64,000 nt of DNA, from contig JAMWBK010000003.1 of NCBI GenBank assembly GCA_029953675.1, forward strand, positions 186,001 through 250,000, in the 5' to 3' direction. Shown one piece after another: positions 54,137 through 64,000 of the stretch; position 1 is the stretch's first letter, and each line of letters starts with the position of its first letter. The notes under the pieces are model-generated. The model made no database searches. It was not told where the DNA came from and saw only the letters and a program-made list of their open reading frames with translations. This stretch comes from Rhodosorus marinus CCMP1338 (lineage: Eukaryota; Plantae; Rhodophyta). The translations under genes were made by a program, and so were the position numbers.

Positions 54137-55473
54137 CTAGGCCGTAACATCTTCGGTCACTGGTGTGCTCTCGGTCTCAGCTTCAGCTATGAACTGCTGC
54201 CATTTCTTCGAGAGCGCCACAACTTGCCCAATAATTAGCAACGTCGGACTTCTCAGTCCGTTCTCCTCGACCTATTTATGCGAACAGGTCAACTCCGAGA
54301 ATGAGAACAGTGATAAGGCGGGAATGTTGTAGTTCGTGAACAGTTCTACCTTCTGAGGGAAGTCTCCAAACTCTGAGAATACGATCCTCTGTCCAGGCAA
54401 TGTACCTCTCTCCACGGCGACGGCTGGCGTGTCTGTGGGCAGACCATGGCGCAGTAGGACTTCAGAGAGCTTGGGCAAGTTGGACAGACCCATGTATATC
54501 ACAAGGGTGGTATTCTTGTCGACGGCGCCTTGGAAGGACTAGATATGGATAAAGGCCAGGAGCTGACGATTAGTGATCAGGTTCTCAAGCGGTTCGTGAC
54601 AGTCCTGAACTTACATCCTCAAATTCATCACCGTCCTCTCGAAAGTGCCCAGTGATGTACCGCACGCTCGTGGCAACGCCTCTGTGCGTCATTGGAATAC
54701 CTAACTCTGCGCCGATGCCGGAAGCTGCCGTAATTCCCGGGATACAGGTTACCTCGACTCCTTTTTTCTCCAGATACTCAAGCTCTTCTCCACCTCGCCC
54801 AAAGATGTAAGGATCACCTCCCTTGATAAGGAGATACAATCACCGGAGTCTATGTTAGCAGGGAGGCGTTTGAAGTATTAAGTGCTCGAGAATGACGCTC
54901 ACCTTGAGTCTGAGGATAGTGCCGCCGGCTTCAGCAAACTGAAACAGAAGATCATGAATATCCTCCTGCTTTCGCGTGTGAAATCCTTTTTCCTTTCCCA
55001 CGTAGATCATTCTCGCGCTCGGGTTGACGAAATCTAAGAACACGGGAAAAAGCAGCAAGCTGCCAAGTAAATATTCTGCACCACCAACTGATGACTAGCC
55101 CTAACGAAAGCTCTACCCAAGGGGCTTTGGAAGACCACGTACTCATTATGTCATTAGATACCAGGCGATCGTAGAGCACAACGTCGCAACTTTTCATCAA
55201 CTGCACAGCTCCCAAAGTAAGCAAAGAGGGATCCCCGGGACCCGTTCCAACCAGATATACTGATCCAGGCCCTGAGCTATTCTCTCTTCTGTTTTCTCTG
55301 ATACTCTCTACGGCGGCTTTCAAATCCGCCATCATATCCTTCCCGTTCGCAGTCATCCTGGTTGTCGTTCGGGGCCTAAACCGACCGCTGCGGGGAGACA
55401 CCCGCGACCGACGGCCCCCAACCCCAACATGCCCGAGTCCCAACCCTCCAACAAAAGCGCACTGACCCTCCAT
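54137..55473 (-). CDS. UPM1: Uroporphyrinogen-III C-methyltransferase (SUMT/CobA; siroheme synthesis), plastid-targeted
   Basis: MEGQCAFV leader, [42 protein letters not shown] and IYMGL. Confidence 0.95.
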
Positions 55474-57579
55474 TTTCAACCGTCTCAAGTTGGACCAGCT
55501 CTCCCACAAAATCGAACAGAATTCACACCCCCCCCCCCACGAGGTCCTCAATCCAGCTACAAAACTTACCAAAGCAACCCTCCAGGAATCATCGTCGAAG
55601 CCACTCACCCTCTCCCCACTCCCACCCCATATGCAACCATCCCTCCAAAAGCCAATTTTAAAAGATCTCTTCCACGACCTCCCTTCCTTCGTCCTACTCT
55701 AATTTTCTCCAGAAATCTCGTTCGTCAACTGCCTCTCACTCACAAAAGCCCTACTGTTTCCTCCCCCGAAACGCATACACTCCATTTTCACACATCCCCT
55801 GCCAACAGCCTACACACCCCAACTAGCGAGCGATGTGTGCCCTCCCGCCCCTGGGCGAAGCAGGTTGGAATATGTTCGAAAACGATAATACAATATCCCC
55901 TTTCGTGACTTTTTCCGTCCGGGCATGAAAAAAAAACAAACAAACAAACAAACAAAACAAAAACAAGATATCCCCCGAAAAAAAAACAAAAACACGACGT
56001 TTCTGCCTCCAACCGTCGTATTTTTCTGAAAAACAAATTTCGTTTTTGATTGAAGATAAGATAAGATCAGAAAAACAAAACAATACAGAGAGACGAAGGT
56101 GTGTCAATATGGATTGAACGCTTTAAAATATAATCATTTCAACGTTCAGTGGCGGTGGTGGCTTTTCTTCTTCCTATTGAAATCTCGTCTATTTGTCTCG
56201 CTTATATGTTTTTGTTTTTAAGTTTATTTCGGTTGTTCATAAGGTATAGTACTATATTAAGATATATGATTCGATAATATTATTTATTAACGAGATAGAC
56301 TAGATATTATTGGATTATAAGGATGGAATATGGTAAAGTTTATTGATTAAAATTGGATGATGACGCGAGAATTTGCGCGCACTGACTGGCACACGCAAAG
56401 GTTGGAGAAGTGGTGATGCCAAACCATGGCAAGCCAACCATTGCGCAGTTGAACGACGACTTGTAATCGAGGTCTTCAGGTTGTTTTTTTGAGGTTATAC
56501 AAGCGCGACAAGACTTGAGGATAGTTTTCGCGATGACCATACGTCTCGCTCACAATTGCTCTCTTTGCTGAGTGAGTTGTGCAGCGGTTGGCTGAAAAAA
56601 AAAAAACAACTAGCGAGCCCAGGTGGGTGTGTTGGGACAGGGAAAGAGGAGCCACCAGTGTGTGACTACGACGTTAACAGTGAACACAAACTCCTAAAAA
56701 TTATTGGTGGTCGCACCGCTACGAAGTGCAACCAAAGAGTTGCCCATCCACAGCACAGTGGCGTTCTATTGCCGCCTTTGTGTTAGAGGTCCGTTCTCTC
56801 GATTCCTCTCATGTCCGTGAATAAACCCGGTTGATCGACAGACGTGCCGGAATTTTCAGGGTTTGAGCATTCTTGTTGGTCTGCAAAGATTTGTGTCTCC
56901 CCCAGCTTGGAGAACTGGTTCTGAAAGGACCTTCACCATTTATTGTCATATACCGCTAAGAAAACATCCCTTGTACAAACTTCGTGCGTTCTGCCCAGGA
57001 AACCCTGGCGATCAAAACACAAAACCACATCAAGCACAGCAAGTTCCATTCTAAAGCTCGTTGATGATCGCTGCATCAGGTAGATCTTCCTATGAAACAA
57101 CAGAAGTTCTCCATCTCCGTTCTTGTACTAAGCGAGAAATGTACAATCCCCCCACATCCTCCGCTGCCGTCCGCTGCCTACCCCGGAAAGTGCCATATGG
57201 ACGAAGTCTGGGTCTCAGGTCATAAGCGGCGTCGTCGTCGTGGGCATGGGGGGATGGGCTTGCGATATCAGGAGCCTGACAATATTTTTCGAGCTTTGCT
57301 AGAGATAGTTGGAAGAGATTTGGACACGGAAGAGCTGATCTGAGCTAAACCCTGCTAATCGAGCAGTGCTGAATTTGTTTTGGGTGAGTTTGGTGGGACG
57401 ATGATGAGTTTCTTTCTGGTGGGTTGGCGAGTTCAAATGAAGCTTTTTGCATGTTGTTCCGGTGGTTTTTCCTTTTTTTTCGTTTTGATGGACGGGTGAT
57501 GAGTATGATGTAATCTATTTGTCATCACTTTACATATTGCCTCGGAACATTGTGCGGAAACCGACGCGAAAGATCTCCG

Positions 57580-59833: not shown

Positions 59834-62045
59834 ATGAAGTTGACAGAAGAAAATCAACAGGAGGCTACTGTTCTGCTGTCTGAGAAGTCCTCTATGTTCA
59901 AGGACTGCTCAGCGGCAAGCCTAGCGCTCATTGTATCGAAATTGGAGCTCTTTCAGTTCGCGAGAGGGGAGAAGGTAGGTTTCCAATGCGACGCAAGCCA
60001 TCCGGAAGGGATCCACAGTATTGAAACCTTCAATCTCCCTCCGTGTGTATATCTAACCTGTAAATCAGTTTTTGGAGCAAGGGGTTGCATCAGAGTACAT
60101 GTATCTTATGAGCGAGGGAGAGGTGCTTCGATATCGTGAGGAGTCTGGAGTAGAGCACCAGGTTGATATTTCACCCGGGGGCATTGAGCAAGCGCCGATA
60201 AAGGCCGCTTCGCCGAGTAGAACCTTGAAAAACAGCACAGTTGATTCATCGAGATCTTCCTCCGTCTCTACTCACCGAATTGTCGAACAGGTTGATCCGA
60301 ACCAGCACCTGGCCACGATCAATTCGATGCACTACTTGCGGGGGGATCCAGCCTACTCGTCGGCAGTTTGCACTTCCACCATTTGTAAAGCGTATGCGCT
60401 CAGCCAGAGTCAATTCATGGACACGCTGTCCACAAGACCTCCACTCGCAGCTGAAATCATCACATCACTACAGAAAGAGGTCCGCGAACAGAAAAACGCT
60501 CTTCGCACACCCTTTCTCGAACTGAAGAATCGCAAAGTACTGCGGCCCTCAACTTCTTCTCATCAAAGAATGACATAAGCGGTCTAAGACGTTTCTCCTG
60601 TGTTTTCGAAATCGCACGCAGGACATCAACATCCCTGCAGTTTCCGTCGCAGCGGCTATCGAATCGTACTATAGATCAGCGCTGAATGCTATGCTGAACG
60701 CGAGACTACTCGGCACAAAAGCCGCCTTCTTCCCTAACATGCACGTTCAGGTAAGCATAACCGTAGCCCCAGACCAAGGCCGCGCGTTCTCCTGTCATAG
60801 ATCAATGCAACGGCCATTCTACTGAGACTGTTGCAACTCTAAACATATGCTCGGAGAGTCGAGACCTCGCTTCTTATCAGTGTGTTAATGCCCCCGTCGA
60901 GCGAATGTCTAACCTTGGTTGATGTGACCTCACTCCTTTGGTAGGTACCCGCCCGTGTGGTATATATCAACGGATTCAAGGGCATGCGGGCCTTTTTGGA
61001 CAGGAACGTGAGACCGGAGGAATACACCCACCCTAATGTCATAAGATGTACCGCAGCGGTTGGGCCTGGTATCCTTATGAATCCCATTTCAAGCGTTTTG
61101 GAAGCATCCAATGCTGGTGAGTTAGATCGGCGCGTGTATGAACTGGTACCAGGGCACTCGTCCTGATAAAAGTAACGCTTCTCTTGCTCCCGGTCACAGG
61201 CCACAAGAATCCGGAAAGTATGAGCAAGCGATGGATGCGGGGGTTTGTACCGAGGGCCGTACGTGAGGTCATTTTTGGAATCGGCTTGAATCAGTTGTCT
61301 GACTGGTTCGAGGAACGTTGGACACCCTACTTGACTTCAAAATCCATGGCAAACGCCGTCGGCTCGCTATCGGCTGGTGTAATAGCTGGTTATTTGTCTC
61401 ATGTACCGCACAACCTGTCAGCGTACAAACTGATGGAACCACATAGAACGTACGGGGAGCACTTTCGGAGATTTATCGACGCTTCAGCTCCAGATCATAT
61501 CGTACCGAAGAGCTTACCTCCCAGGTACCTTGCCAAACCGCGCTCCAGTTGTTCTTCACTCGCATCCATATGACAGTCCCACTAATGAAACGCTTCTCGC
61601 GTGTGTGACTCGATGTTGTTTCAGACTCCGAAGCTACGCGAGAATGACTCTGGCAGTGCTATTTCCCCGTGGGTGCATGATTCGAACAACACAGATTGTC
61701 GGATCGTTTATGATTCTCAATGGTACTATCGGATACCTGGCGCGGCTGGATCAGGACAGAATCAATCGAGCTTTCGGAGAGGTAATTTTCTTTCTTCACC
61801 ATCATTTCTCATCGTTGACTTCCTGTTTACTAACGCTTTCCCTTCTTGTCTGGAACCGAAAAGAGCTCGAGCGTGCCAGTGGTGGAGTGAGGGAGCGGGG
61901 CTCGGGCGAAACCCTAAAACGGAGACTACAGATGAGACTGCGAGCATTTTTGAACGGAGCAGTGGTGGAAAAGCACCGCGTAGAGATGGACCCTGCAGCA
62001 AGCAGGAGCCGTTTTCCTTTTTGTCTGCTTGGCGTTGATACTTAA
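59834..62045 (+). CDS. Fusion of an N-terminal cyclic-nucleotide-binding-like domain and a divergent mitochondrial carrier (SLC25-like) domain; both termini uncertain
   Basis: cNMP-like MFKDC...FQFARGEK|FLEQGVASEYMYLMSEGEV. Carrier-like helices GPGILMNPISSVLEA, WMRGFVPRAVREVIFGIGLNQLSDW, GSLSAGVIAGYLSHVPHNLSAYKL and FPRGCMIRTTQIVGSFMILN. The exons join through GT-AG introns. Confidence 0.78.
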
Positions 62046-62212: not shown

Positions 62213-64000
62213 TCAGTCCGCTGGAGAAGTCAACGGTCCCGGAGTCTCGATTGCGGCGTCCGAGACATCCTTCTGCTTGCTAAAGAGCGAGGATACCGCT
62301 TTCATGAGCCGGGAATAGGCCACAAGCAGCTGGAACGCATAAATACGGATGTGCATGTTTAGAGTTCTTGACCTGACCTGAAGCGTGGACATCCAGTCAC
62401 CCGGATCCAAGTTGGAAAGACCCTCCTCCTCTATCACTCGACTTATGGTCTCCGCCGTAATGGTCAACGTGTTCAGTGGGGCCCCTAGGGCACGGTCGAT
62501 GCTCCGAAGATTATCGTTTGTCTTCATAACAAGGAGAAGCTCCCTCGGCATGGACGATAGGAGTTCGCTGATCTCTGGAAAGTACTGTTCGACGTACCCC
62601 CTCAGCTCCTCACTGTTGTCCGTGCCGTGTTTCATCTCCAGCCTATCAAATGCAAGCTTGCTTTCCACCTCATTATCCACCCCAACGATCTGATTCCATG
62701 ATTTCAGCGTCAGCATCGCCGCCAGGAGGCGAAAAGATTCCCCATCCGCCCCAAGTCCGACCGCGCTCGACTGAACCTCTGATTCATTTCTAGTCATCAA
62801 ACCATGCCAAAGATGCGCATAATCTATCCTAAATCTGTCTCCGAGTTCTTTGTACAGGCCATGGTCAAGAAGAACCAGCTGTGGCTTGGTCGGCCTCTCA
62901 GGGTGTCTCCTGACAAGAATATTCCCCCCGTGAGGGTCACAGTGTAGAAACCCATGCTTGAAGATCTAGTCCATGAGAGCGCGCAACAAAAAACAGTGGG
63001 TTCGTGGTACCGTACGGTTCGTCTCAGATTTCTGGACGGAATGTCTCAGCTAGCGGTTAGAGAGGACAACTTACTTGATCCGCAAAAGTCCTGGAAATGA
63101 TCCTGGAGACGTCCTTTGGGTCCAATCCCATCCCCATGATCTTGTCAACCATCAAAATTTGGGTGCCTTCCTCGAAGCTCATCGTCAGAACACTGGACGT
63201 CGTCCAATCCCAGTGCACATCGGGCGTAACCATCTCAGTTGAATCTCCAAGGTTGCGCCTGCACCGTTCCAAGTTTTCACCTGTACGGGGCACATCCAAC
63301 GTTTGGCTTGTTCTTTGAGAAACCTCCTACTTAACACAACGGAGGGCTCGAAAGTCTGTCAACACCGCTTGTCGTGTCCAAACGGACATTTTCTCACCTT
63401 CAAGAACAAAATCGAGCTCTTTTGGAAGGTTTTCTGCGGTCTCCTCTGCTATCCACCGGAAGTCAAAGTTTGGGAAAAGGTGGTGCGCAAGACTGACCAG
63501 TGACGTTACAGTGAAGATATCAGCCTTCGACGACTCTTGCAGTCCTAAATGCTGAACTTTTACGGCTACTTTCTGATTGCTGTCCTTTCGAACTGCAGAA
63601 TGTACCTGTAGATGCAGCCGGATGTCCGTCTTTAAGATGCGCAGGAAAGGCAGTGGAAAAGGATCATGGACGTTGTTACACGTACTTGAGCCAACGACGC
63701 AACGGCGATTGGTTCTTCAGAGAACGAGCTGAAACAAGAGTCTATGTCTGAGCCAAATTCTCTCCTGAAAACTTCACGAATTTGACTGATTGACCTCGGC
63801 CGACAGGCAGCCAACAAGGAGGAGAGTGTACGGCAGTACTGCGCTGGGATGACATGATCTAGTTGAGCCAGATGCTGGCCAAATTTGATATAAAGACCGC
63901 CATTCTTCTCACAGAGCTCCAACAATCTCCTTGCACCTCGTTCGTGAGCTAAATTCCGCAATACGTCAGGATCCCCATCCCTATATCGGTTCAGTTTGTA
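62213..64000 (-). CDS. ABC1/UbiB atypical kinase (ADCK1/5-like), 5' end outside the window
   Basis: NGGLYIKFGQHL, PIAVASLAQV, VLTMSFEEG, HCDPHGGNILV and DHGLY. Confidence 0.93.

Follow-up and report, generated by a model that had tools for sequence, protein, structure and literature searches.

What does a protein do in which a cyclic-nucleotide-binding-like domain is joined to a membrane domain resembling a mitochondrial carrier? The question is raised by a gene on the forward strand of contig JAMWBK010000003.1 (assembly GCA_029953675.1) of the red alga Rhodosorus marinus CCMP1338. It lies in a stretch of 64,000 nucleotides (positions 186,001 to 250,000 of the contig) that was analysed as a whole and is called here the window; nucleotide coordinates below are those of the window. 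A single mRNA encodes both folds, and the residues that contact cyclic nucleoside monophosphates (cNMPs) have been lost throughout the family. The even-helix motif [W/F]x[R]G..P...R of carriers is kept, and R221, R250, R322, R325 and R432 are invariant or nearly so within the helices. The explanation that we favour, and to which we give about an even chance of being right, is that a cyclic-nucleotide-binding (CNB) homology domain has been joined to a divergent SLC25 fold, giving a transporter for an anionic or zwitterionic substrate that would be regulated by a ligand other than a cNMP.

Gene structure and transcript support

The gene is read as a single spliced frame on the plus strand. This frame contains every peptide string quoted in the initial annotation, an earlier reading of the locus made from the letters of the window and their open reading frames (ORFs): FQFARGEK continued across intron 1 by FLEQGVASEYMYLMSEGEV, INSMHYLRGDPAYSSAV (aa 131-147), the C-helix FMDTLSTRPPLAAEII and, all within the C-terminal half, NPISSVLEA, GFVPRAVRE and VPHNLSAYK. 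The splice model has six introns, each GT..AG and 82-194 nt long. The helix limits given with the exons are those assigned by DSSP in an AlphaFold2 (AF2) model.

59834..61890, plus strand: whole coding region; 7 exons, 6 GT..AG introns, 472 aa, TGA stop at 61888-61890
59834..59974, plus strand: exon 1 (aa 1-47); part of the CNB-like domain (N-terminal helices, first beta strands)
60069..60536, plus strand: exon 2 (aa 48-203); CNB beta-roll, cassette, C-helix and conserved linker RTPFLE
60622..60750, plus strand: exon 3 (aa 204-246); predicted carrier-like helix H1 (207-233, ...AAAIESYYRSALN...) and loop LFPNMH, from the AF2 DSSP assignment and conservation
60945..61116, plus strand: exon 4 (aa 247-304); H2 (243-267) and H3 (276-303, ...GPGILMNPISSVLEASNAG)
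61200..61524, plus strand: exon 5 (aa 304-412); short helix 311-314, H4 (319-347, RWMRGFVPRAVREVIFGIGLNQLSDWFEER), H5 (351-382, ...AGVIAGYLSHVPHNLSAYKLM) and a loop helix
61625..61781, plus strand: exon 6 (aa 412-464); loop helix and H6 (429-466, LFPRGCMIRTTQIVGSFMILNGTIGYL...)
61864..61890, plus strand: exon 7 (aa 465-472, SSSVPVVE) and stop; C-terminus identical in P0001 and related in P0002 (SSGVAVAE)

The two halves belong to one mRNA, as the initial annotation had assumed, because both are covered end to end by the ORF of a transcript. This is P0001, the best database match, a 'complete' Rhodosorus marinus transcript ORF of 472 aa (MMETSP0315, taxid 101924), which is identical to the window protein at 442 of 472 positions (94%) with no gaps. 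By tblastn it is collinear with exons 1-6 of the gene. The match places the window in a Rhodosorus-like stylonematophycean red alga. The idea that the halves are separate genes was therefore discarded on the transcript evidence and on the conservation of the fusion in hundreds of homologues.

The 3' end of the gene, placed by the initial annotation at 62045, had to be moved. P0001 ends in ...GESSSVPVVE, sharing SSSVPVVE with the window protein, and ...GESSGVAVAE is the ending of P0002, another red-algal transcript, in whose 90% cluster Bangiopsis is found. Since the red-algal transcript ORFs share that ending, the stop codon is the TGA at 61888-61890. The same endings ruled out models B and C, of 523 and 551 aa, which used a downstream acceptor or retained intron 6 and ended at 62045.

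Intron 6 (61782-61863) is 82 nt long, not a multiple of three, and contains no in-frame stop codon. Its retention, or the use of an AG 2 nt downstream, would shift the frame and lengthen the C-terminus, giving products of 523-551 aa that end at 62045. Alternative C-terminal isoforms arising in this way are conceivable; the homologous transcripts give them no support.

A CNB-like domain without the cyclic nucleotide contacts

Residues 1-191 have the CNB fold, a beta-roll followed by a C-helix, as had been proposed for this half of the protein. Against PF00027 the window protein reaches 22.6 bits and P0001 reaches 27.0 bits, both just below the cutoff of 27.5. The same model is matched in 40 of 47 divergent members of the family at up to 53 bits, with P0205 (53.4 bits), P0130 (49.1) and P0143 (41.4) above the Pfam cutoff. 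A family profile built from 87 sequences finds chains of PKG, the PKA regulatory subunit and CRP/GlxR in the PDB with E-values of 2e-26 to 1e-14. Moreover, the full-length AF2 model retrieves with Foldseek the CNB domains of CRP, PKA-R and HCN (E ~1e-6, target template modelling (TM) score up to 0.83). All structures were predicted from P0001 instead of the window protein; the two share residue numbers and differ at 30 residues. The initial annotation had also set the protein apart from the carriers with EF-hand regulators and, in agreement, no EF-hand family was found among the Pfam matches of the window protein at E<=10.

Two features of the beta-roll are of particular concern here:

60318..60371, plus strand: phosphate-binding cassette INSMHYLRGDPAYSSAVC (aa 131-148), degenerate, with Asn-Ser in place of Gly-Glu and Ala in place of Arg
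60180..60299, plus strand: Ser-rich insertion in a beta-roll loop (aa 85-124, 40 residues); predicted local distance difference test score (pLDDT) <50, predicted to be disordered

The canonical cassette F-G-E-[LI]-A-...-P-R-[ST]-A-[ST]-V stands in the alignment against I-N-S-M-...-P-A-Y-S-S-A of the window protein. In 86 close homologues, tallied by the six commonest residues per column, the Gly-Glu columns are occupied by Asn (68) and Ser (73), and the Arg column by Val, Ala or Ser, with Arg not among these six. In the 47 divergent members, which were read row by row, the Gly is often back, the Glu is replaced by Ala, Ser or Thr, and none has an aligned Arg. A cassette lacking Gly-Glu and Arg, which had been noticed in the window gene, was thus found in every member examined. 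Since the replaced contacts recur across the family they are a family trait and not the decay of one gene, and the replacing residues are themselves conserved. The linker that follows the C-helix reads RTPFLE in the window gene and R-T-P-L-L-E-Q in the family consensus, T194 and P195 being invariant.

The Ser-rich insertion is missing from P0002, the closest homologue from outside Rhodosorus. In the equivalent loop some stramenopile and uncultured members carry an ACT-like module, namely P0149 and P0310 (pelagophyte, aa ~114-168) and P0157 (aa 168-203), with PF01842 scores of 18-25.6 bits, just below the cutoff of 27. The usual ligands of ACT domains being amino acids, this module hints at a sensing of metabolites.

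A pair of cysteines, Cys148...Cys153 (60369-60386), was also observed. Across the 86 homologues from red algae and diatoms, Cys148 never varies and Cys153 is conserved to at least 90%, and the two lie in adjacent predicted strand segments (DSSP E145-148 and E152-159). The pair is not retained across the wider family. From the model, a redox switch or a disulfide is possible, particularly if this domain faces the intermembrane space.

A membrane domain with the predicted carrier fold

The full-length AF2 model has a pLDDT of 86.5 and a predicted TM score (pTM) of 0.72. The C-terminal domain was also modelled alone (pLDDT 86.3, pTM 0.76), because the full-length model gave only CNB matches in Foldseek, which masked the membrane domain. 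DSSP assigns to it the six long helices H1 to H6, and short helices sit in the second and third inter-helix loops of the model. When the isolated domain was compared with the PDB by Foldseek, 12 of the 14 top matches were carriers, with probabilities of 0.99-1.0 and query TM scores (TMq) of 0.46-0.61. A further carrier chain was found at rank 25 (probability 0.92). The non-carrier matches (G-protein-coupled receptors, rhodopsins and designed repeats) had TM scores of ~0.2. The carriers retrieved were the following.

Human UCP1, 8hbv / 8g8w: TMq 0.61 / 0.59
Yeast ADP/ATP carriers, 4c9h/4c9q/4c9g/4c9j: TMq 0.51-0.55
ADP/ATP carrier in the bongkrekic-acid-bound state, 6gci: TMq 0.47
Bovine carrier, 2c3e: TMq 0.51
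Tetrahymena carrier subunits of complex IV: TMq 0.46-0.49

Taken together, the yeast, Thermothelomyces and bovine ADP/ATP carriers give TMq values of 0.47-0.55. The Tetrahymena chain 7w5z_M2/8b6h bears the name '2-oxoglutarate/malate carrier'. From these models, residues 204-466 are predicted to have the fold of the SLC25 superfamily, within what is, by sequence definition, a separate and highly divergent family.

The sequence retains part of the carrier pattern. The starts of the even helices are related to one another, LFPNMHvQVPaR in H2, RWMRGfvPRavRE in H4 and LFPRGcmiRttQ in H6. The initial annotation had stated that the even-helix motif with its P and R-E was kept, and repeat 2 (RWMRGFVPRAVRE) indeed has W-x-R-G, P and R-E, canonically spaced. 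In repeat 3 the sequence is LFPRG...R and in repeat 1 LFPNM...P.R; the upstream [DE]G is not present in any of the three. The odd helices are rich in Gly and Ala, with a kink proline in H3 (NPISS) and H5 (VPHN). Five solved carriers served as the yardstick in hhalign comparisons. Four were copied from PDB alignments, and the fifth, the bovine ADP/ATP carrier, was checked against 1okc (E 2e-201, identical at the aligned positions, 2-298 to 1-297). H4 and H5 of the family fall opposite H4 and H5 of the carriers (P=0.05-0.09, non-significant), so that RWMRGFVPRAVRE.../...AGYLSHVPHN lies opposite H4 and H5 of the ADP/ATP carrier. Compared with a carrier-repeat profile, each of the three repeats falls on the matching helix (P=0.25, 0.06 and 0.01, again non-significant). 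This register, non-significant as it is, agrees with the predicted structure.

Several observations weigh against a carrier assignment. PF00153 was matched at E<=10 neither by the window protein nor by any of 30 members, and by none of 47 members at E<=1. The family profile found no carrier among the PDB sequences at E<=10, hhalign detected no internal repeats, and its comparisons with carriers gave P of only 0.01-0.25, which is non-significant. Both salt-bridge gate networks define the alternating-access mechanism of SLC25 carriers. The signature of the first, Px[DE]xx[KR], had been described as degenerate, and it is intact in none of the three odd helices, likewise in the family consensus: H1 reads AIESYYR, without Pro, H3 NPISSVLE and H5 VPHNLSAYK. 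The second, [FY][DE]xx[KR], was not found on H2 (AFLDRN), H4 (DWFEER) or H6 (GYLARL), where the spacing does not fit. At 69 aa the first repeat is short, and it lacks a loop helix. In addition, AF2 could have been pulled towards a carrier fold that it had met in training. The initial annotation had taken a failure of the C-terminal half to model as a carrier fold as a refutation of its reading; in AF2 this half does take that fold, while a PF00153 match and the two salt-bridge networks were not found.

Among the membrane-domain models of Pfam, only PF18405, 'SLC25_like' (Mitochondrial SLC25 homolog), touches the family repeatedly. It gives sub-threshold matches in 11 of the 47 members, the best at 26.9 bits against a curated cutoff of 34.5, which all scores fall below. 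These matches cover the C-terminal third of the domain (profile positions ~150-275 of 285), and the window protein itself has none. A regex scan found no ordinary carrier gene elsewhere in the window.

The C-terminal domain is under strong purifying selection. Across red algae and diatoms 58 columns are invariant, and R221, R250, K258, R322, R325 and R432 do not vary even in the widest alignment. One pair on H4 deserves mention:

61262..61267, plus strand: R325-E326 on H4; R325 invariant, E326 at least 90% conserved

In the non-significant hhalign register this pair lies opposite G182-I183 of the ADP/ATP carrier, which we take to be substrate contact point II. In the contact-point scheme of Robinson and Kunji, R-[DE] at contact point II is said to mark amino-acid carriers. 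We regard a placement of R325-E326 at contact point II as a lead only, suggested by the alignment.

A probably old and patchily distributed family

The search for homologues gave 376 sequences at E<=1e-3, and the best full-length matches from outside Rhodosorus had E-values of 1e-181 to 1e-105. The best 120 listed matches each span 63-91% of the 523-aa query, and PF00027 is present in 115 of them. Clustered at 50% identity the family has 359 clusters. An exhaustive search of 1.84 billion representatives with a hidden Markov model (HMM) returned these 359 clusters only, so ordinary carriers are not reached by the family profile.

Red-algal members come from Rhodosorus, Bangiopsis, Porphyridium, Compsopogon, Timspurckia, Hildenbrandia, Pyropia and Gracilaria, and diatom members from Seminavis, Fistulifera, Nitzschia, Cylindrotheca, Entomoneis and Gedaniella. 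Further members were found in one pelagophyte, the cercozoan Papus (Rhizaria), the amoebozoans Clydonella and Soliformovum, the holozoans Syssomonas and Salpingoeca urceolata and the euglenozoans Cryptobia and Artemidia. None of the members carrying an organism name is from animals, fungi or land plants. The first matches, in red algae and diatoms, suggested a plastid-specific family, an idea that was dropped given the members in the plastid-less Salpingoeca, Syssomonas, Cryptobia, Artemidia, Clydonella, Soliformovum and Papus. Transcriptome contamination may account for single taxa. The spread over several supergroups, plastid-less lineages included, speaks for an old eukaryotic family that has been patchily retained. 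The fusion reported by the initial annotation is therefore widely conserved, and it is not a one-off of this alga but belongs to a pan-eukaryotic family.

Some members have the membrane domain without the CNB domain. These include Salpingoeca rosetta (P0162, PTSG_04493), S. kvevrii and an uncultured relative; in P0162, P0165 and P0151 the carrier-like domain stands behind a low-complexity N-terminus of 100-200 aa rich in Ala, Thr and Ser. Salpingoeca urceolata (P0138) retains the CNB domain. As these choanoflagellate members are without it, the sensor appears to have been lost or replaced within one lineage. A few predictions of 257-275 aa consist of the membrane domain only.

In UniRef the CNB-less member of S. 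rosetta bears the automatic name 'Mitochondrial carrier protein'; elsewhere the public names read 'hypothetical protein', 'cNMP' and 'Cyclic nucleotide-binding domain-containing protein'. The initial annotation knew of no characterised carrier with a cNMP domain, and our full-text literature search likewise found no paper on a CNB-carrier fusion or on the family, and nothing of use on PTSG_04493 or PF18405.

Comparison with known systems

With the SLC25 carriers (PF00153) the family shares the predicted fold of three two-helix repeats in ~260-300 aa (TM 0.5-0.6 to solved carriers) and the even-helix signature [WF]x[RK]G..P...R[DE], which repeat 2 retains and repeat 3 retains in part. It differs from them in the absence of PF00153, of Px[DE]xx[KR] and of [FY][DE]xx[KR], in the shortened repeat 1 and in having invariant residues of its own, ESYYRSALN, FPNMHxQVPxR, SHVPHN and QIVGSFxILNG.

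A parallel in architecture is offered by the Ca2+-regulated aspartate/glutamate (AGC1/2) and ATP-Mg/Pi (APC/SCaMC) carriers, which have the same order of soluble N-terminal sensor, linker helix and C-terminal carrier fold; in both cases one would expect the sensor to face the cytosol or the intermembrane space. However, their sensor consists of EF-hands, whereas that of the family is of CNB homology, and the carrier half of the family is far more divergent. For the sensor itself the likeness is to the CNB homology domain (CNBHD) of KCNH/EAG channels and to the CRP/FNR relatives that bind haem, 2-oxoglutarate or aromatic ligands, where a beta-roll and C-helix likewise occur without Gly-Glu and Arg. 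In those proteins the partner is a channel or a DNA-binding domain, whereas here it is a carrier fold, and the replacements (Asn/Gly-Ser, Tyr/Phe and, in red algae and diatoms, Cys148/Cys153) are specific to the family. The divergent SLC25 relatives of the outer membrane, the insertases MTCH1/2 together with SLC25A46 and Ugo1, also combine a carrier-like fold with degenerate motifs, with a non-canonical function possible, but they have no detectable sequence relationship to the family and none carries a CNB domain.

Proposed function and alternatives

In the mechanism that we propose, the protein would reside in an organellar membrane. The mitochondrial inner membrane appears most likely, because many members are from plastid-less organisms and the diatom members have no signal peptide. 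The usual carrier topology would place both termini and the sensor domain towards the cytosol or the intermembrane space. An arginine-lined cavity would carry an anionic or zwitterionic metabolite. The CNB-like domain would lack canonical binding of cAMP or cGMP and would respond instead to another small molecule or to an intrinsic ligand, opening or blocking the cytosolic face of the carrier in parallel to what EF-hand domains do. Ligand gating, transport and organellar location are all parts that we infer.

The most serious rival is a role other than transport. It is a real rival because the family has no PF00153 match and neither salt-bridge network, and we consider it unlikely on balance. 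The carrier-fold domain would then serve protein insertion, lipid handling or the dynamics or tethering of organelles, with the CNB-like domain as a cytosolic regulatory or interaction module. The loss of both gate motifs, seen in the sequence and in the conservation pattern, speaks for this, as do a distance from ordinary carriers as great as that of MTCH1/2, SLC25A46 and Ugo1 and the long low-complexity N-terminus that replaces the CNB domain in some members. It fits poorly with six full-length predicted helices whose best structural matches are bona fide transporters, UCP1 and the ADP/ATP carriers, and the MTCH2 chimera 12oy, which the PDB set contains, does not appear in the 50 best Foldseek matches. 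Moreover, the many invariant Arg, Glu, His and Gln residues inside the helices, R325-E326 at its putative substrate contact position included, form the pattern that a substrate-binding cavity would be expected to show. Improbable, in our judgement, is a site in a membrane other than the mitochondrial inner one, for instance the envelope of the plastid or the peroxisomal membrane. In plants several members of SLC25 are found in plastids and peroxisomes, and the first named matches are from red algae and diatoms. Nevertheless, members occur in plastid-less choanoflagellates, in Syssomonas, in kinetoplastid and diplonemid flagellates and in amoebae, and the diatom members, inspected by eye, open straight with the CNB domain and show neither a signal peptide nor an ASAFAP-type leader.

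The protein could also be a canonical carrier gated by cAMP or cGMP, the cyclic nucleotide being held through different contacts. The CNB fold of the domain is unmistakable, the Pfam cutoff is exceeded by several members, and the cassette region is conserved within the family and not decayed. Yet the Glu for the ribose 2'-OH and the Arg for the cyclic phosphate were seen at the aligned positions in no member examined; Asn/Gly-Ser/Ala/Thr and Val/Ala-Tyr/Phe stand there instead. CNB folds without these residues, such as the KCNH CNBHD, CooA, NtcA and CprK, bind other ligands or none, and we hold gating by cAMP or cGMP to be distinctly improbable. Returning to the non-cNMP transporter that we favour, one may extend it to an ancient family, possibly as old as the last eukaryotic common ancestor, in which a repurposed CNB pocket senses a metabolite other than cAMP or cGMP and gates an SLC25-fold transporter whose own Arg/His/Glu network has taken the place of both salt-bridge gates. 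The ACT-like module of some lineages and the Cys pair of red algae and diatoms would be additions to this sensor. In this full form the proposal is possible but rather doubtful.

To our knowledge, the Ca2+/EF-hand carriers are the only members of the superfamily with an attached sensor domain. What appears to be new in this family, as judged from sequence and model, is that a protein of carrier fold bears a sensor of a new class and has non-canonical gates. If this is true, a carrier fold with a CNB-type sensor would represent a second and independent mode of ligand control besides Ca2+ and EF-hands, and there would exist a carrier mechanism without the classical gates. It would also bear on the limits of drift in this fold, both gate networks being gone in a protein that is still strongly selected, and would tie the sensing of a metabolite or second messenger to organellar transport in organisms where cyclic-nucleotide signalling is poorly understood. 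Profile databases miss the carrier-like domain, and almost all members are annotated by the CNB domain or as hypothetical. Model diatoms and red algae make the protein an approachable experimental target.

Neighbouring genes

A further gene and an ORF of the window were noticed on the minus strand:

62213-64000, minus strand: convergent downstream neighbour, a spliced ABC1/ADCK (UbiB-type) atypical kinase gene, with PF03109 on two exon ORFs (E 3e-12 and 8e-10); the gene runs past the end of the window
54952-55608, minus strand: ORF with ...VVLYDRLV, a putative tetrapyrrole (uroporphyrin-III C / siroheme-type) methyltransferase motif recognized by eye

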